From positions 1,674,001-1,738,000 of the forward strand of contig JBLDXI010000055.1 in assembly GCA_047495785.1 (NCBI GenBank): 64,000 bases of DNA, in the 5' to 3' direction. Under the pieces are notes generated by a model that made no database searches, was not told the DNA's origin, and saw nothing but the letters and a program-made list of their open reading frames with translations. Below are positions 34,901-46,512 of this stretch, piece by piece (position 1 is the stretch's first letter; every line of letters begins with the position of its first letter). The DNA is from Lepidodermella squamata. Lineage: Eukaryota > Animalia > Gastrotricha. The position numbers and the translations under genes are program-made.

Positions 34901-37062
34901 TGTGCTGCTGTTTTCTAAAAACCAATCAGCTATGAACAGGTGAGTACAAAAAGTAGTATTTTCTAACATCTGACCGCTCTCGTCTCGTATCGGATAGGAT
35001 CCTAAAATCTCAAGGTGGCCTTGAGCAGCTTTCATTTGAGCTGACCCTTGCTATTGCGTCCATTGGTATCTCTCTCGTTGACAATGATCGCCGACGAGAA
35101 GTGGCTTACATGGGCATTTCGCCGTCGAAAGCTTGGCAGTATCAAAATGCTGGCGAAGGAAGGCCAACGTGGATTCCATTCAACTCGAAACAAGAGCTTG
35201 TATTGGAGCGAGAATTCGCCAAGCTTTCTGAATTTCCCGACCCTGCAGCAGCTGAATTAATCTCTCTTGGGAAAAATATCGCGGTGAGATGGTTGCTAAA
35301 TTTTGGTACAACGGAATGCATTTTTTTCAACTTTCAGGTTGACTTGAAATCGATGAAAATGCGCAAATATCGAAAGGACATAGCGATAAGGCGGTTGTTC
35401 CAGCCTGGCATGTGGACTAAAATTGGCTACTCGAACCGCCAATTTCGCATTCATTACAAGCTGCATCAATTGCAGATTGACAACCAAAACCCAGACGCGC
35501 CTTTCCCTACAGCTCTCCACCACCCTTCTCAAGCAGCGAGACATGGCCTTGACGTCGACCGTTTTGTACCATTCATGGAAATCAGCGTGCTTCTCCAGAT
35601 GCAATCCTCCTCCCAAATGCTTGTCTACAAGTACTTCAAAGTGCTCGTGCAAGAGATGGCCGTCAAAGTTGACTTTGTTTTCCTCAGTCATCTCTACGCT
35701 TTTTTCACCCCAATTAATTTGGATAGCGCTGATTCAGCGATGCTTGCAGCCGCTGTTCAGTCTGATATCAGGCGGACTGAGTTACCGCTACAAAACTGTC
35801 ATCTTGGCCCTCAGTTCACCACAGGGTTAAAACGGCTTTTCGAGTCATTGCACGTCTCTCCCTTGAAGATTAGGCTCAGCTTCTCGCCTATCAGGAAGTA
35901 TGGCCCTGGTCCGGGTGATGAACACGCATCGCTCCTTGGCAGTTTTGGAAATGCCGCGTTGTCTTCGATTGGGCTTGTGACAGGAGAGGTCAAAGATGTC
36001 GTATTCAGGCTCGGCTATTTTGAGCGATTTTCGACATTCATGACATGGCCGCAGCTTCTCAATGCGCTCTCATGGCATTACTCGCAGCAAGCACTTAAAC
36101 AGTTCTACTCTGTGGTGATGGGCCTCGATCTTCTCGGGAATCCATCGAGTATCGCTCGAGGATTCGCTGACGGAATTGAAACTCTGTTTTACGAACCTAT
36201 AGAGGGAGCTATACAAGGCCCGGATGAGTTAGCTCGGGGAATGGTGCGCGGTTTGCGAGGGTTTTTGGGGAAAACTGTCGGAACAGTCTCCGGTGGCCTT
36301 GGTAAAGTCACCGGGACAGTGGGTCAAGCTATCGTAAAGCTGACGTTTGACAAGGAGTTTCAACATGAGCGACGGCTAGGTAGGCTTCGCAATGGTCAGT
36401 CAGCGACCCAGAACTTCGTGCAGGGAGTTACAAGCCTAGGCAGCGGCTTCAAACACGGCGCCAGTGGGCTTTTGTTGAAGCCGATTCAAGGTGCGAGGCA
36501 AGGTGGGTTTTTCGGCTTCATTAAAGGACTCGGAGTTGGAACAGTCGGCGCTGTTGTTCGACCAACAATCGGCTTGATAGATTTTACCAGCCACTCGTTC
36601 GACACGGTTCAACGAATCATGGACTCTGTTGAAGAGTGCTACCAACTACGGCCGCTGAGGCTTCTCGGAAAAGATGGGTCTATTCGGCCGTACGTTTTCG
36701 CAGACGCACAAGTTAACGCCATCCTGATCGTCGCTGCTAAAGGCCGCTTTCGAGCCGAACGATATGTAACGCATCTGCTGTTACAAGAGGATGGCAAGCG
36801 CTTGTTGGTCGCCACAGAAATTGGCCTGCACTGCTTATCGTCAGCCTCGGGCTGGTTCGACAAGTGGACACTTGAATTCAGCGGATCGTGGTCAGATATT
36901 GAGAGTGATCCTAAACTGGACGCGAACAAATCTTCGATTATTGTCAAGCTATTCGGTAGCCAAGAACTGCCGATTTCGCACGCACTAACAAATGACGATG
37001 TGGCTCTAATTCAAGAATTTATTGCAGTTTTATCACATTTGCGCCGAACAAATAACCGCTGA
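25976..37062 (+). CDS. VPS13: VPS13A/C-like bridge lipid-transfer protein, many short introns, roughly 3,000 aa
   Basis: Chorein-N (RYFKNINVAQLQLGL..GRVILEKLEL, NLQITINGVHIRFED), YYNNRIHVWEPLIEP, VAB repeats (PVVVRNLLPY, LTKIVTFTPYFFLVN), QLQIDNQ, FESLHVSPLKI, GLDLLGNP..LFYEP ATG2_C helices and a C-terminal PH-like region. Internal exon boundaries were not all resolved. Confidence 0.92.
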
Positions 37063-37595
37063 AAATAAAAACGCTTCCGCTTGGTACTATGACTTTTTAA
37101 CTCTAAAGCTAGAGCCTAAAATTGTCGTTTCGCCCAGGTGGGCGTCGCAGGCGTAAATCACAGTTTAACCTTACACAATTTGCTGTTGACCGGCTTTTAT
37201 AATAGAGTAATCAGTGATACGGTTGGGATATGTACCTTATCACTGCTCTTGAAATTTACTCCATAACACGTGTTCTTTCTACACATTATCAAGTTTTCGA
37301 GATATCGCAACCGTGTCATAGATAGTGTTGCACTTAAACCTATGAACCTAATTCCTGCCATGGTTGATAGGACCCTATTCTACGTTTTAAAAACACAAGT
37401 AGCTATAGCCCCTCTACACGACAACAATATGTCATGACTAATATGTTGTGTAAAATATAACTTGTTAATTTTACTCTCAAGCCATTCCAAACCGATGAAT
37501 GTTTTTCTTATTCTCTTGTTGGCTCAAACAAATTAACTCATTCGAAATCGTCATATTCAAATTTTTTAGGTTTCTAAAACCTCCAAAGTTTTACT

Positions 37596-40500
37596 ATGTT
37601 TGTTCGCCTGAATATTCAGTATGAAGTCAATCGAGAGCCGAAAAGTGTCAACGTAAAAGCCTCGGATCTAGTCAAAGACGTATACGCTATAGCGGGCGAA
37701 CATCTGCCAGAAGCGCAGTCGCACAAATGCGGCCTGTTTTTGCCCAACAAATTCGACGCATCGAAAGGCCTGTGGCTGGAACCCACGCGCACAATCAGCT
37801 ATTACCAAATGATCGGGCACGACTCGACGTTGCTATTCAAAAAGAAGTTCATCAACTTGGCTGTCAAGACACTAGATGGAACGTGCAAGAAAATAGAGGT
37901 TGACGAAAGCAAAGTGGTTGCCGATCTGATGCAGGAAATCTGTTCCAAGATGGGAATTGTCAATTTTGAGGAGTATTCACTTGTACGTGACGAAGAGCCA
38001 ACAATCAGCGACAAAACTGACGACGCGGCGGCGAAAGATCCGAAATTGAAACAGATTCGTAAAAAGGTGAAAACGGACGAAGCCATAGCTTGGTTGAATC
38101 ACGCGCAAACACTTCGTGAACAAGACCTTATAAACAACCTCGAATCGAAGCCGTTGATATTAAGGCGGAAATTTTTCCTGTCTGACCGCAATGTTGACAC
38201 GAGGGATCATATTCAGCTGACGCTGCTTTACGCCCAATGCGTTGACGGAATAACCAGCGGTAGATACCAAGTCACTCAAAAAGAGGCAATAATGCTGGCT
38301 GGTTTGCAACTATACATCGAGCGTGGCCCATATTTCGCAGCCTATGAGCAGGTAGATGTCGACGGTTACCTGCCGAAAGATTTCAAGAGTAAGGGACTCG
38401 AGCGCGAAATATATTCCTACTACAGCAGTTTGGGAGAGATTGCTCAAGCTGAAGCGCGGCTAAAATATGTACAGACCTGCAGGCAATTACGAACCTATGG
38501 CATAGCCCTATTTCTTGGCAAGGTAACATCATTCACCATTTATTTAATTCATTATTCGCTTATTTTAAATGATAGGAAAAAGCTGAGGGTAAAAGAAAAC
38601 TTCAGCCAGTTCTGATAGGCATCACCCGAGACGGAGTTGTGCGCATCAAACCTGACAGTCGACAGGTGCTGCAAGAGTGGCCGCTAACTACGATCAAGCA
38701 ATGGTCGACGACGAGCAAAATATTGAAACTTGACTTTGGTGAATACGGGCCGCCTTATTCTGTACAGACGCAAGAGGGTGAGCAAATTGTGCGGTTGTTA
38801 GCTGGCTACGCGGAAATCATATGGAAAAAACTTCAAGCCACTGAATTTTCACCGCCACCCGCTGAAAGTGAGCCCAGTGGGCCTAAGTTCGGTAATGTCA
38901 AAGCACAACGTGGCAAACTGGTGATGATGAGATTTGGCAAAAAGTCGGAAGATCGTCTCAACACGACGCCTTCCAGTGAAAGTGTTGATGCGTTTGATGA
39001 CGATGACGGCACGGATGACGATTTCGAGCACTCTTCAAACTCGTCCCCAAGTAGAGGCAATTTAACAGGTGTGGCATTGTTGGACGAAATCATGAAGATG
39101 TTGGCGGAAGCTTTTGAAAACCCAACGCCAGCGGGTCATACGGTAATATTTTTTTGAAAAACTTAGCTACGTTCTCCGTCGTATCAAACGCGCTTTGCAA
39201 TAATTTCAGCTATCAGCTCACAAAGCTCAATCATATTTATGCGAAATTTACTTTTTCTTAGACTGACAAAACACGGCGCAATGCGGTGTCCAACACTCGC
39301 CAGAATGTTTCCAGTCATTTATCCGCAGTCAGCCATGCCACAGCATCTATTTTGGCTGGGGCTTTAGCTGCTGCCAGCCATCCTAACGACGACAAGTTGA
39401 GTGGGGGCGTTGCAGATGCCGTCGACGGCCTCTCCAATGAATTTCCGCCCCTGTTCGACGACATTCTGGAACTACTGCAATACAGCGACGAAGATGGCCC
39501 GACTGGCAGCAATTTAATGGCAGCTGCTCGGCGACTTGCTGGTGCGTTCAAAGACATGCTGCGCGCTGCTCAATCGAGAGATGATGACGTCAGTCCTTAG
39601 TTTCAATGCAAAAATTCTATATCCGCTGAACTTATTAATTTTCCAGGCTCAGCAGAAGTTACTTTCAGCCGCAGCTAATGTTGCAGAAGCTGTTGATGCG
39701 ATGAAGGAAGTTACTGGCATCGCAAAGAACCCCGGAGATAAATCCTGCAAGGTATATTTTTGACGGAGGTCTAAAATTATCAATTCTATATGGGGTCATC
39801 TTTATAGTCAATTATTGCGACGACTGCAGAGAATGCCGGCTATAAGATTGAGTGGTTGAACGCTGCAAAAGGTGATATTACAGATGCGCCGCCCGGCAGT
39901 CATGACAGGCAGCCGGAGCCTCGCCAGCTCCCAGCCGTACCTCCTAAATCAAAGCCACTTCCCCCAACACCCCCGACGAGCCCCACGCTGACCAGCGAGG
40001 TCATTCGCAAAACGAAAATTGTCATTAAATCAGACGACCCTGAAGACTGGAAAAACCTGGCAGATATGACTGGATTGTTGATAAATGCAATCAATAACAC
40101 AATTAGCGATGAGCCGGACGCGGGCTTGAGGAAGCGATTGTTGGAAGCTGCGAAAAGGTTGACCGATGCTGCCGGTAGGATGCTTGAAGCTGCTTCTGTG
40201 GTTCCCAAGTCAGCGGAAGAAGCTGCTGAGCTTCACGAAACAGCGAGTCACATTGCTATGGAAATTCAAGCGGCCGCCACTTCGGTTGGCCCAATAAGAT
40301 CTCCGAATAGGCCTCTTTCCCAGGCTTCGACAGTTTCTGAGGATCCAAATAGAAGCCCGGTCACTTTGAAGCCCAAACCGCTGCCGCCAACTCCGCCTAG
40401 CCGCGGCCCCACTGTTAACACCGAAGTTTCGAAGAGAGCCAAAAGTTTAGTCGTCGAGATCAGCCAAAATGGATCAATCAATGGCGTTCAAGATTTAGTC

Positions 40501-42854
40501 GATGCTGCCGCATTTCTCACGCTTTGCTTGAATAGCAAATTTCAGGGAGAAAAAGAGGATGACTTAAGAAATCGTCTCCTCGACGCTGCCAAGCAATTGG
40601 CGGCGGCAACAGGGAATATGGTTTCGTTAGCTGCTAAGGTTCCACATACCCCACAGGAAGCTTCGAATCTTCGAGAATCTATACGCCAGACTGCAGAACT
40701 TATCCAAGCAATCGCCGAAAAAGCTGATAATTTCCCCATGCCCGCAAGCCCTTTAACAATCAACAACTCCTCGAAGTCTATGGGCACCACGCTTGCCGCT
40801 AATGCTGAAGCATTGCTAGCTGCAAACAATACAAATGAACTTGAAGCTTCGAATTTGGCCGATATAGCCGATCTGTTAGTTGCATTTCAATCGGCCTGTA
40901 TCGGCGACGGGGATGCGAAATCGAATAAATTACTTGATGCAGCTAGACGTTTGGCTGAGGCTGCGAGAAAAATGGTCAAAATCGGCTCGGAATCTCCAAC
41001 ATCCGATCCAGAATTGGCTAAACTGCAAGATACCATCTTGGGCTGTATTCAGACTTTAAAATCGCCTGATTCGCCCGGTGTTTCACCTTTGATTGACGCA
41101 AAAAATTCGAACATCAGCTCAACTGAGGTTCCAGGGGCTCATCAGCGCTCTAAGCCGGTGCCACCTGTACCGCCTGCCAAGTCACCCACGCTAACAAATG
41201 AAATTATTAGAAAATCGAAACTGCTAGCTACCGCCGATCAAGACAAAATAGCCGTTGGTGCGAAAGACCTCGCTAGCAATCTCGATTTACTCATCGCTGG
41301 CTTATCGGGGAAGAGCGGTCACGAACCTGACGAAGCGCGAAGAAATCGGCTCCTCGATGCTGCGAAAAAGCTTGCCGATGCCGCGAGTAAGCTTATGCAT
41401 GTTGCAGCTACCGGCCCCCAATCCTCGCAAGAATCATCCAACTACCGCGAGGTCCTCCGGTTGATAGCCGATGAGGTTCAACAAATCGTTGAAACATTTG
41501 GGCCTATACCGTTTCCGGCGGACGCAGCAGCTGCGATTGACAAGGGCAAAGTCATTCCTCCTGCAATTTCGAAGCCTAAACCTCCTCCACCGCCTCCCAA
41601 ATCAAAGCCACAAATGATAATGAAAATAGATGAGTTGACAAAATGTGACAGCCTTGACGAAGTGCCAGATAGAGCGAACGACCTGGCTCATTTGACCCGG
41701 CTTTTGATATCTACTATCAATGATAGGGCAGCGGGCGAACAAGATCAAGGCAAGAAAAGCAGCCTGCTCCTCGCTGCTCAGCAACTTGCTGATGCGGCTA
41801 GCCGAATGATTGAAGCCGCTTCAGTGGTTCCACAATCGTCGCAATCTAGCGATGCAGTGAAACAGGCTGCTGAGCAGATTCGAACCACAGCCGTAGCTAC
41901 CGGGCTTGTTCATGCCGTAGATCGTGGCGCCGAAAAAGTAGAAGTAGCTCCGCCTCGGGTTCAAACAATCGTTCAGAATCAAGTGGCAAAGCCAGCAGCA
42001 GAGCAAAGCATCGAACAGCAATTAGCAGCTGCAGCTTCGGAAATTTCGGAGGTAGAACGGCGGTTAGCGGCGTTGCAACCTGTTCGATCAGCTCAGAAAG
42101 TCGCCGAAAAATCGGGAAAAATAGTGAAGCCAACCTTGCCTGAACACGGCCAAATTATTGACGCGTGTCGTGCTATGGCCGGTGTCACTCAAGATTTAAT
42201 TCGATCGGCATCCCAAGCTCAACAAGAACTGGTCGCTCTGGGACGGGTTAGAAACTATTTATTATCGTTATATTATTTTTATTTTGGTCATAGGTGACAC
42301 TTCACTCGGGTAGGCAACACGCTTACGCTGGGGATATGAATCTGTGGTCGCAAGGTCTAGTTTCAGCGGCTAAAATGGTAGCCGAGGCCACGCATAATCT
42401 ATTCGAGTCAGCTGATCTGCTGCTGAGTGGGAAAGGCTCTAAAGAGCGCCTTCTAGCAGCAGCGCGACAAGTATCTTCGGGTACCGCGCAGCTTGTGTTA
42501 GCTTGTAGAGTAAAGGCTGATCAAAATTCAAGCTCCTATCACAAACTGCAGGCTGCAGGTCTTGCGATTAAGGGTGCCACTGAAGATTTGGTTGCAACTG
42601 TTCAGCGGCTGCTTGGTGAAACTGCAGACTCTAGCGGCAAAACTGATGTTGATGACGTCGACGAAAAATCTCGCGTTGGCGGCCTGACTCGCGTAATTAA
42701 ATTTTTATTTTCATCAAATTTAGTTTATTTTCTATTTCTATTTCAGATTATTGATATCCAAGAAGATATTATGCGGAAAGAGCGTGAACTGGAAGAAGCT
42801 CGCCGAAAGTTGGCCGAATTTAGAAAAGGACAATACGTGGCGAGCACTGATTGA
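37596..42854 (+). CDS. TLN: Atypical short talin, 1,623 aa: F0-F1-F2-F3, R1, 5x R3-like, R13 (I/LWEQ) and dimerisation helix; exons 37596-38522, 38576-39142, 39262-39588, 39647-39751, 39808-42246, 42294-42692, 42747-42854
   Basis: GLWLEP, VKTLDG, NFEEYSLV, LRRKFFLSDRNVDTRDHIQLTLLYAQ, LRTYG, EWPLTTIKQW..LDFGEY..YSVQTQEGEQI, WSQGLVSAA, ACRVKAD, QEDIMRKERELEEARRKL. Confidence 0.92.
39922..41901 (+). repeat. Five diverged ~100-aa four-helix-bundle repeats (talin R3-like), four preceded by polyproline linkers
   Basis: Recurrent LLxAAxxLAxAAxxM core at about 39988-40278, 40414-40716, 40780-41058, 41191-41490 and 41608-41901. Confidence 0.85.
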
Positions 42855-43499
42855 CACACATAGCGCGAAATTGAAATCTAAATGATCAATTAATTTCCCG
42901 TGATGAATTCTATTTTTAGTGTTGAAGCTACTATAAATAACATCATCATTGTCGATAATCGTGATTTATTTTTTACCTTACAATTTTTTTAATAAAATTC
43001 TTGAAATTAACAGCAGCCTTTTTCTAGAGAATAAGCTCGAAGTTAGGCTGTTTGTGGTGTATGTTAGCTCAGTGGGAAATTGCGACAGCGAACTGCTGCG
43101 GTTGACAGCTCATTCAAATTCAAATCACAAGATTATTCTACAAGGCACGGAAGTTTCACCTGCTTTTGACGCTAGTAATTTTTATTTTAGCCACTCACCC
43201 AATGGCTGCCGAAACTATATTCGAGTTCATGGTGGAATAAATATTTCCCAGTCGACTTTGAATTTTTACCCATTTGACTTGACAAACGATGACTTCTTTC
43301 AAGGATATGGTGCTGCGCTGTCATAAACTAGTTTGCAGTTTACATATATTCGATTCTTCATAATTAACAGACTAGTATGAATGAGACCCGTTAAGCGTTG
43401 TTTATTAGCGAGAAATGTTGGCAATGTGATTAACAGCCTTGCCTGGAGCTGCGAACACTGTTTACCTTGACGATGTTAATTTCTCCAGGTGTAGTATAG

Positions 43500-44367
43500 G
43501 TACTCGACGTGAAAATGCGGATCCATGAACGCACTTGACGATGCATGTGGTCGTCCGTTTCCGCAGCCATGTGTGTGTTAATTGGATGACTTGTTGTCGA
43601 AGAGCGAAGACGCGCCCTAATCAACGCGAGCAGCAGACACGCAATACACGCGTCGGCCAATCAGCGAGCGAGGCCGTGCGCGCATGATTGACGGCAGCGA
43701 TGCGGTTACGCCGAGGTGGTTTCGTCGCCTCGCAGCTCGAATGCTTCATTCAAACGCGCTCGGTTGCCGCATTCAACAATGATTCAAGTCGATCGGCCTT
43801 CCTGTTTAGATGCATGTCACCACTTTTTAAACACATTCCGCGCTCGCATAGGCGCCGAATAGCAACCATCCGCCAGTTACCGCCGCGCGCTCACATGCCG
43901 ACAGATTCCGCGCTCGCTCGTTCGGGTCGCAGCGATTCACCTGAGCGGCTCTCTCATTTGCATTTCGGGGCTGCACAGAGAATACACAAACACACGATGA
44001 GGCATTTCGCATGCGCGCTTGCCGCCTGCAATAAAACGCGAGTCGGCACCCACGTGCGCGATATGCTGATGTCGGCTTGCTGTCATTTGTCAACTGCTTG
44101 TTAAATATTCTCCGCTTGTTTCTTGTTTCAACAAATAGGCTCTCGTTATAATTTGTTACCTTTGACTCGGTTTTATTGCCGTCGATTTACAAGCCGAGGT
44201 GCGTCACTTCAAGTCGCTAAAAGCATTCGTCAAGTGTTACACAGTCGGCAGCGAATAACTATCAAACGAGAGCGAAGCAAAAGGTGTAGAGCGCTCGATA
44301 CTCGCCCATCATCGCACTCGTGTCATCTTCTCTTCTTGTCATTTACTATCCTATCATCCGGTCGATA
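43500..44367 (+). promoter_or_regulatory. Probable cis-regulatory/promoter region of Brachyury (CpG/GC-rich non-coding block)
   Basis: The 1.5-kb gap between talin and Brachyury has no credible ORF and is visibly CG-rich compared with the AT-rich spacers elsewhere. No individual binding site is claimed. Confidence 0.45.
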
Positions 44368-46512
44368 ATGTCAAGCGTTAGCTTACAACAGCAACAGCAG
44401 CAGCAGCACCCATCTGCTACAACTTCGTCTGCTGCGCCGCCGGCAGTCGGCGGTGTCGCTGTCAAGCGATCGCTCCAGCACTGTCAGCCTGGCGCGCCGG
44501 CATCGTGCCAGCTAGCCGACGCCGAACTGTGGCGGCGTTTCCACGAGGTCGGCAACGAGATGATTGTCACCAAAGCCGGCAGGTTCGATTGATTTCATAA
44601 CACTTTTTCTTGCATATTTGGGACATTGATTAATTATCGATTTTATATTACTCATTTCTTTATTTTTTCAGGCGCATGTTTCCGGTGATCGCCGTGTCAA
44701 TCAGCGGCCTCGACCCGGACGCGCTCTATTCGGTTTGCGTCGAATTTCATCCGGCGGATGACAATCGTTACAAGTACGTCGGCGGGCAGTGGGTGATCGC
44801 GGCCAAAAGCCAGCTGCACGACGTGCCCGTGCCGACTTACTGGCACCCGGAGATACCGAACTTTGGCGCGCATTGGATGAACAACATTGTCTCGTTCGGC
44901 AAGCTCAAGCTCACAAACAAGGACAAGCTCGATAAATCGGTAAGCTTACACGCACGCCGCTCGTTTCATCAATTATTTTAATTATTTAATTTTTGCCGCT
45001 TTTGTAACAGCAAGTTTCCCTGGTTACACTTCATCTGTACCAGCCGGTAATCCGCATCATCCGCGTCGCCGGGCAGCAAGAGCGATTTACTGTGGCTACG
45101 TTCACGTTTCCCGAAACGCGATTTATGGCGGTTACGTCGTACCAGAACGAGGATGTAAGTTATTAGCCCACGTCAAATTAGCGGCATTTTAATCGCGCGC
45201 TTTTCATTTCGCAGGTCACATCGCTCAAAGTTCGCTACAACCCGTTCGCGCAGAAAGTTTTCCAGGACATGGCGAAAGGCCGCTCTGGCGGCGGTTCGTC
45301 GACTGGCGGCAACGACGAAGATGATGTGGACGAGCCGAACATGTCGCCGGCCTCGATAGTCGAACAGACTCGCCCCAACGCTAGCTCAACAGCGAAAATG
45401 ATGAAAAGTGAGTTTTCAACCCATTCGCTATGTGCTAAATCTTAAACATTCATTTTTTTTTACTAGGTTCTAATGGCGCCGCGATCGCTACATCTTCCAC
45501 GAACGCAAGCATGGCGGCGTACGCTGCCAGAGGCCAGCAACCTCAGCAGTCTCAACAGCAGCAGCAGCAGATATCGCCGAATCAGCCGCGCCAAACAACC
45601 GCCTGCCAGCCTCACCGGCCCGTCGCGTGTCAGCCAAACCTCATCGACAGCGGAATGATGGGCATGAGTTCGGCTATGCAAGACTTCTCGACGTCGTTTT
45701 CGCGCTACGGCGCTTTTGCTCCGCCTGTTCATCAGCAGCCCATGTTCGACCAGTTTGCCACTAACCCAGCCGAATGCTTCCAGTTCTCGTCGATGTACGG
45801 CGGCAGCGGTGCTTTTTCTACTGGTTACCCGCAGTCGACCAATCAGCACGCGATGAGTCAGCCAAATTTCTCCAACTCGTCCATGCCACCAGTCACGTCA
45901 GCCAGCGCCGCCGCTGCAGCCGCTGCCTATGCTTCGTACGCCTCGTCTTCACTTCTCAGCTCGGCGCTTCCATCAGCAAATTCAGCCACCGCCTTCTGGC
46001 CTGGTTTTAACTTGTATCCAGCGCCAGCGCATACAGCAGCATCAGCCGTGTCTGTCCCTTCATTCAATGCATCTTCGGCCTTGTCAATGCTGTCCAACAA
46101 AAGCAATGAAGTAGCCTCACCTGCGACACCTTCAACTCCCTCAGGGCCGAATAGCAACCCGAACAGCGCGTCGAGCAGCGGCGGTCGGTCAAGCGGCACT
46201 GTTTCGCTGATGCGCCTCGGCGCTTCTTCCGGCAACTCTTCGTCTTCGACTACTACAACTCCGACGTTACAATCGTTGGCGAATCGCTCGTCGGTCGAGC
46301 TGTCCGGCGCGGCGTCGGCAACTTCGTCGAGCTCCGGCACCGTCAAGTCATCGCCACCCGAGTCCGGCTACTGCGGCTCACCCCCTGTTGCGGAAGATTG
46401 GGCTGCGTGCGCTTATCAGCAACTGTCGGCGCGGCCTGGCAGCAACGCCAACCCTCAAATCGTCATCAACTCCGTCACGTCATCAACGTCCTCAAGCTCA
46501 AATAACTACTAA
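44368..46512 (+). CDS. TBXT: T-box transcription factor, Brachyury subfamily (divergent); exons 44368-44582, 44672-44939, 45011-45154, 45215-45407, 45467-46512
   Basis: NEMIVTKAGRRMFPV, RYKYVGGQWV, PNFGAHWM, KLKLTNK (Brachyury-type Lys where most T-boxes have Asn), FPETRFMAVTSYQN, LKVRYNPFA; Q/S/A-rich C-terminal tail. Confidence 0.8.

Follow-up and report, generated by a model that had tools for sequence, protein, structure and literature searches.

The window analysed here is a stretch of 64,000 nucleotides (nt) from the gastrotrich Lepidodermella squamata (assembly GCA_047495785.1, contig JBLDXI010000055.1, referred to below as C55). It carries a gene for a short talin, in which a talin head and a talin tail are joined by a rod containing five tandem bundles of predicted R3 type. 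The gene (37596-42854, + strand; coordinates given without a contig name are positions in the window) consists of seven exons separated by GT-AG introns of 47-119 nt, all in phase 0. Its spliced reading frame of 4,872 nt is open and encodes a product of 1,623 amino acids (aa), arranged in the order F0-F3 head, head-rod linker, five-helix R1, five tandem helical units, R13 (I/LWEQ) and dimerisation helix. The features of the gene are as follows.

37562..37569, + strand: unpaired acceptor-like ttttttag, 26 nt before the talin ATG, possibly a spliced-leader trans-splice site
37596..38522, + strand: exon 1, head F0, F1 (with a short F1 loop) and F2; Pfam FERM_f0 (5.2e-11), RA_2/FERM_N and FERM_M (2e-18)
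38576..39142, + strand: exon 2, F3 (PTB-like), acidic and Ser-rich head-rod linker and first R1 helix (the helix placed by eye); Pfam IRS PTB (1.5e-18)
39262..39588, + strand: exon 3, R1 helices 2-4 including a VBS1-like helix (helices by eye); Talin_middle (2e-13)
39647..39751, + strand: exon 4, last R1 helix
39808..42246, + strand: exon 5, 2,439 nt (813 aa), possible R2 remnant, five units of linker plus R3-type bundle, and R13 start
42004..42246, + strand: R13 start (I/LWEQ, actin-binding site 3) at the end of exon 5, aligning to talin-1 2JSW residues 13-82
42294..42692, + strand: exon 6, R13 (I/LWEQ) core; Pfam I_LWEQ (6.3e-33, 114 bits)
42747..42854, + strand: exon 7, dimerisation helix and stop codon; I_LWEQ positions 122-150
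42991..42996, + strand: AATAAA, likely poly(A) signal; RNA-like coverage ends in bin 42816-43012

Pfam places in the product the atypical FERM head of talins (F0, F1, F2 and a PTB-like F3), and at its other end the I/LWEQ bundle R13 is followed by the dimerisation helix, as in the talin tail. The fixed-order R1-R13 rod was not found; the rod consists of R1, five R3-type bundles and R13 only. By its predicted head and tail the product is a talin, from which the canonical rod is absent. This layout and the length of 1,623 aa had been proposed in a first-pass annotation made from the sequence, and both are borne out by the seven-exon model and the Pfam matches. The peptides quoted in that annotation are present in the product, and the five copies indeed lie in one 2.4-kb exon (exon 5). 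The introns are so short that they could not conceal further rod exons. The annotation had also described R2 and R4-R12 as missing, which holds for R4-R12 but perhaps not for the whole of R2: at the beginning of exon 5, ~20 residues (SIIATTAENAGYKIEWLN) show a weak match to the first part of the exon that codes for the last R2 helix in a second talin gene (on contig C19, see below), which faintly suggests that a remnant of this helix persists there.

The short talin gene is intact, transcribed and under purifying selection. Contigs from run X1 behave like RNA, their depth being zero before 37694 and after ~43012. They contain two GT..AG joints (42245>42293 and 42692>42747) that correspond exactly to introns 5 and 6, as well as a loose end at 39589 that continues into exon 4 and supports intron 3, and their coverage is continuous across exon 5. 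The C19 talin has introns at the same six positions. Run X2, an independent assembly of a relative diverged by ~3%, is co-linear with the window, with insertions and deletions confined to introns and flank. Among the 39 coding differences listed between X2 and the window, 27 are synonymous and 12 non-synonymous, an excess that indicates purifying selection. Mis-assembly of the repeats is not an issue, because pairwise identity among the five units is only 21-41%.

The five repeated units of exon 5

The units measure ~105-125 aa each and all lie inside exon 5.

39928..40299, + strand: unit 1, aa 683-806, KPLPPTPP linker and four-helix bundle; Talin_VBS2 (2.4e-7)
40357..40740, + strand: unit 2, aa 826-953, KPLPPTPP linker and bundle; leave-one-out profile 94 bits
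40762..41079, + strand: unit 3, aa 961-1066, the most divergent unit, lacking the proline motif; leave-one-out profile 41.5 bits (E 7e-15)
41140..41511, + strand: unit 4, aa 1087-1210, KPVPPVPP linker and bundle
41563..41934, + strand: unit 5, aa 1228-1351, KPKPPPPPP linker and bundle; Talin_VBS2 (1.4e-6); close counterpart of R3' of the C19 talin

An alignment of the units extends over ~120 columns, with L, L, L, L, A, A, L, A and P invariant. Unit 1 matches unit 4 in BLASTP with an E-value of 2e-14, and the pairwise match of unit 3 is weak (E 0.03). When each unit was searched with a profile of the other four, it was found at 41.5-111 bits, all but unit 3 reaching 73-111 bits. The proline-rich motif KPxPPxPP opens units 1, 2, 4 and 5 and is followed by (S/G/K)P(T/Q); the linkers between units are rich in Ser/Thr-Pro sites. 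We take the KPxPPxPP linkers to fit the +xxPxxP pattern of class I SH3 ligands.

Among 177,635 distinct PDB sequences, the top match of every unit was talin-1 R3 (2L7A), with E-values of 1.2e-5, 5.8e-3, 0.023, 0.018 and 9.2e-5 for units 1-5. A profile built from the five units matched 2L7A at 47.3 bits (E 2.3e-11) over all four helices. On full-length talin-1 (6R9T) the same profile scored 36.7 bits at residues 804-905, which is R3, versus at most 7.2 bits on the other rod domains, and it matched the crystallised VBS2 peptide 1U6H_B at 7e-4. On the C19 talin it found R3 (35 bits) and R3' (126 bits) only. The Pfam family Talin_VBS2 (PF25177) matched five stretches in exon 5 (E 2.2e-17) and was the best talin family for each unit taken alone.

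Unit 1, the only unit that was confidently modelled as a structure, was predicted by AlphaFold2 from a 14-row family alignment to form a four-helix bundle (pLDDT 85; helices 21-34, 38-61, 65-90 and 96-120). A Foldseek search of the PDB with this model returned 2L7A at rank 1 (E 4.5e-3, TM 0.65), and VIA-align placed it on residues 790-908 of full-length talin cryo-EM chains with Z scores of 12.4-12.5.

The second talin gene and the origin of the units

Only two talin genes were found in the genome (121 Mb, 151 contigs). The other one, at C19:1346278-1355170 (loci L006, L007), was modelled with 2,130 aa in the order head-R1-R2-R3-R1'-R2'-Pro-rich linker-R3'-R7R8-R13-DD; the segment after R3' matches talin-1 residues 1357-1653 (R7R8) with an E-value of 2e-18. 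The two talins are 70% identical in the head (69% when exon 1 is compared with the head exon of the C19 talin) and 59% identical in R13-DD, and R1 of the short talin is 45% identical to C19 R1 versus 32% to C19 R1'. Unit 1 shows 46% identity to C19 R3'. In a maximum-likelihood tree the five units group with R3' of the C19 talin and with R3' of P0001 (support 86/93), the latter being a fragment of a C19-type talin orthologue from an ENA metagenome contig (locus L010). The first R3 copies are separate from this clade (support 96/90). By these sequence comparisons, the five units share a common origin with the proline-linked R3' of the C19 talin.

The short talin is likely to derive from a C19-like ancestor by a few changes. 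The small exon for R2 helices 1-3 would have been lost, the segment from R2 helix 4 through R2' (R3 and R1' included) and R7R8 would have been deleted, and the Pro-R3' unit would have undergone an old tandem amplification within one exon.

Domain searches were six-frame searches of the genome assembly, with prokaryotic genomes as controls. Within this scope Talin_R4 and IBS2B gave no match outside C19, and PF08913 and PF21865 gave no match anywhere in the genome. The domains R4-R6 and R9-R12 thus appear to be missing from the genome altogether, and with them a canonical talin. Two further loci with an I/LWEQ domain, on contig C9, were considered as talins and rejected; they are tandem HIP1/HIP1R-like genes (C9:2177761-2184279; L008, L009) in which long coiled coils are followed by I/LWEQ.

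The first-pass annotation had taken every repeat to be R3-like. The PDB ranking (five of five units), the profile match to talin-1 804-905, the structural comparison of unit 1 and the repeat phylogeny agree with this, and none of the repeats maps to a different rod domain. Its description of the gene as a paralogue of a canonical talin was wrong, because the genome holds no canonical talin but only the remodelled C19 talin beside the short one. The proline-rich linkers and the origin of the units in copies of R3' go beyond what it had described.

Upstream of the talin gene lies a VPS13-like C-terminal open reading frame (ORF; 35101-37062), which stops at 37062. No VPS13 paralogue is adjacent to the C19 talin, and there is thus no sign of a co-linear duplicated block. 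The VPS13-like ORF has a paralogue (44% identity) on C55 itself, 216 kb further downstream (C55:1927059-1928825), and two fragments of 65 aa on contig C2 (C2:223384-223578 and C2:229236-229430), 89% identical to the ORF and interrupted by one stop codon each, are probably pseudogene pieces. A T-box transcription factor gene probably has its first exon downstream of the talin gene, in an ORF at 44320-44592 that contains a poly-Q tract and, in addition, a T-box-like motif (VGNEMIVTKAGR).

Predicted vinculin-binding helices and the proposed function

The most conserved part of each unit is a helix of VBS2 type (named after vinculin-binding site 2 of talin; invariant L, L, A, A, L). This third helix reads, for the five units in order, LLEAAKRLTDAAGRMLEAA, LLDAAKQLAAATGNMVSLA, LLDAARRLAEAARKMVKIG, LLDAAKKLADAASKLMHVA and LLLAAQQLADAASRMIEAA; the VBS2 of talin-1 reads LLSAAKILADATAKMVEAA. 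All five units keep the VBS2 spacing L..AA..L(A/T)..(A/T)..(M/L)(hydrophobic), with Ala at position 19 everywhere except in unit 3, which has Gly. The genome has a vinculin gene with a recognisable D1 domain (C20:2431945-2435611; loci L013, L014, L016), which is divided over several exons, its first helix lying partly in an upstream exon. A gene of the vinculin/alpha-catenin family was also observed at C21:1358314-1360654, as was a D1-like ORF of 545 aa at C13:2388955-2389614.

With the head and R13-DD as its conserved ends (70% and 59% identity to the C19 talin), the short talin may be read as a dimeric linker from integrin to actin. The rod between these ends, without the autoinhibitory partner R9, the second integrin-binding site IBS2 (R11), actin-binding site 2 (ABS2; R4-R8) and the R7/R8 docking sites, would form a chain of five similar bundles. 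Pulling would open each bundle and expose the predicted vinculin-binding helices, and the KPxPPxPP linkers may add docking sites for adaptors. A chain of force-gated, vinculin-binding bundles is favoured because the VBS2-type helices are retained and the genome encodes a vinculin. Contact between F3 and R9 is the known autoinhibition of talin, which cannot operate in the absence of R9; other regulation is possible. That the short talin may be constitutively open follows solely from the absence of R9. Taken as a whole, we consider it probable that the locus holds a transcribed and selected short talin that is related to R3' through its units, descends from a C19-like gene and has a rod predicted to recruit vinculin under force.

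Several observations weigh against parts of this interpretation. In Pfam scans of single units, units 2-4 score below the gathering score, and units 3 and 4 are nearly tied between Talin_VBS2 and Talin_middle or IBS2B. FAT-type four-helix bundles tie with talin or slightly exceed it in VIA-align (Z 11.6-13.5), and because of these tied scores the fold alone cannot separate R3 from FAT-type bundles; the sequence tests discriminate where the fold does not, and they support an assignment of the five units to R3-type bundles. A single-sequence AlphaFold model of the whole of exon 5 was poor (pLDDT 47.6), usable only for the pattern of four helices per unit and for the low confidence of the linkers. 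Introns 1, 2 and 4 rest on sequence and on conservation in the paralogue, as far as can be judged from the 15 of 32 read joints listed.

The most specific of these points concerns the core of the bundle. The core of vertebrate R3 is destabilised by a belt of four threonines; when these are replaced by Ile or Val, the bundle becomes more stable and its vinculin-binding sites are hidden (PMC8009661; PMC5472591). The residues equivalent to T809, T833, T867 and T901 are T, T, A, I in unit 1; A, A, T, I in unit 2; A, A, A, L in unit 3; S, L, A, V in unit 4; and T, T, A, I in unit 5. At most two belt threonines thus survive per unit (0-2 of four), and at T901 all five units have I, L or V instead. 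Since the belt is only partly retained, the units may be stabler than vertebrate R3, and a low unfolding force is not established. Of the claim that a mechanosensitive R3 switch had been amplified five-fold, the five-fold presence of an R3-type bundle therefore stands, and the low-force character of the units is doubtful.

As the main alternative, the short talin might be chiefly a scaffold, in which folded bundles dock helical ligands of RIAM or LD type, partners of SH3, EVH1 or profilin type bind to the KPxPPxPP linkers, and unfolding and vinculin binding are of minor importance. Such a role would suit the appearance of LD-motif-binding FAT domains among the best structural matches (Z up to 13.5), the conservation of the proline motif before four units and before R3' of the C19 talin and its orthologue, and a unit core that is more hydrophobic than that of vertebrate R3; it would also suit the binding of RIAM by folded vertebrate R3 (10.1101/2021.04.27.441571). 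However, the VBS2-type helix is the best-conserved segment in every unit, and with an integrin-binding head at one end and an actin-binding tail at the other the protein is placed for load bearing, so that we regard a mainly scaffolding role as unlikely.

A compressed R2-R12, in which the five units would be remnants of different canonical rod domains and not copies of one domain, was tested and found no support. The generic motif LLxAAKxLAxA is common to talin rod helices, and for units 3 and 4 the score on Talin_VBS2 is hardly better than that on Talin_middle or IBS2B. Nevertheless, R3 is the top PDB match for all five units, the joint profile picks out R3 alone within talin-1 and just R3 and R3' within the C19 talin, and the units recognise one another (41-111 bits) and form one clade with R3', which makes such an origin highly improbable. 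A decaying duplicate, or an error of gene model or assembly, might be suspected from the lack of an orthologue of the head exon or the five-repeat exon in large protein collections and from introns only partly seen directly in reads, but is extremely improbable given the open frame of 4,872 nt, the canonical splice sites common to the C19 talin, the spliced RNA-like contigs, the prevalence of synonymous differences, the co-linearity of X2 with indels outside the exons only, and units too diverged for mis-assembly. The architecture with five R3-type bundles is supported, and its mechanical and regulatory reading is plausible.

Relatives and comparison with known talins

An exhaustive comparison of exon 5 with 1.84 billion representative proteins yielded four matches only. 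Besides P0001, these were an R3 fragment (P0003), an R13 fragment (P0004) and P0002 (L011:824-5786), which comes from an AT-rich organism (Logan contig of SRR18067259) and comprises R1, R2, four tandem units of ~219 aa, IBS2B and I/LWEQ. Each P0002 unit combines a Talin_VBS2 (R3-like) bundle with a PF08913 'VBS' bundle. P0002 resembles the short talin in the tandem amplification of an R3-containing module, but its longer units lack the proline-rich linker and it retains R2 and an IBS2B-type domain. The P0002 repeats form a separate clade in the repeat tree (support 100/99). In P0002 an R3-containing module has been amplified a second time, independently of the short talin. Scans of JGI metagenomes with exon 5 and with an alignment of the head yielded no related loci, a word-indexed protein search with the head exon gave nothing at E <= 1e-20, and the head found only generic talin and kindlin clusters in the ESM Atlas. 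Apart from the near-identical runs X1 and X2, an orthologue of the five-unit talin was not found in the collections searched. Nor did full-text literature on rod-domain evolution and domain architecture yield a published account of such a talin.

According to Gough & Goult 2018, no available talin sequence varies in length or in the arrangement of its 18 domains, and an invertebrate has just one talin gene (PMC6032930). The short talin and its genome depart from both statements. In the field, the talin rod counts as 13 mechanical switches in a set order, all of them considered universally necessary (PMC6032930). Whether a whole animal lineage has abandoned the 13-bundle talin and keeps two remodelled talins only, the R3-type bundle being a module that evolution multiplies, also in the lineage of P0002, is in our estimation an evenly balanced question. 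If it is so, an animal could be built without R4-R6 and R9-R12, and with them without the R9 autoinhibition site or the second integrin site.

In a genome without a canonical talin, the short talin would represent a natural experiment in deletion and amplification. It bears on which rod domains an animal can spare and whether R9 autoinhibition and IBS2 are obligatory, on the tuning of adhesion by rod length and by the number of vinculin-binding switches, and on the contribution of a proline-rich linker to a force-gated bundle. The units further offer five diverged natural variants of R3 with graded threonine-belt content, which would be useful for single-molecule work.

Compared with canonical talin (vertebrate talin-1/2), the short talin has in common F0-F3, R1 with a VBS1-like helix, an R3-type bundle with a VBS2-like helix, R13 and the dimerisation helix. 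It differs in its length (1,623 aa versus ~2,541 aa), in the absence of R4-R12, in R2 being present as a possible remnant at most, and in the five-fold R3 with proline-rich linkers. The C19 talin shares with it the intron positions, the unit of proline-rich linker and R3', and the conserved head and R13-DD, but has a single Pro-R3' unit and keeps R2, R3, R1', R2' and R7R8.

The nearest functional analogue appears to be an engineered protein, talin-1 deltaR4-12, which consists of aa 1-913 and 2296-2541 (Rahikainen et al. 2017, PMC5472591). Like the short talin it has the head, the N-terminal rod and R13-DD and is devoid of R4-R12, R9 autoinhibition and ABS2; unlike it, deltaR4-12 contains R1, R2 and R3 once each with native short linkers, whereas the short talin has R1 and five R3-type units with long proline-rich linkers. 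The engineered protein accumulates only weakly in adhesions, yet talin-null fibroblasts that carry it polarise and migrate at a normal rate (PMC5472591).

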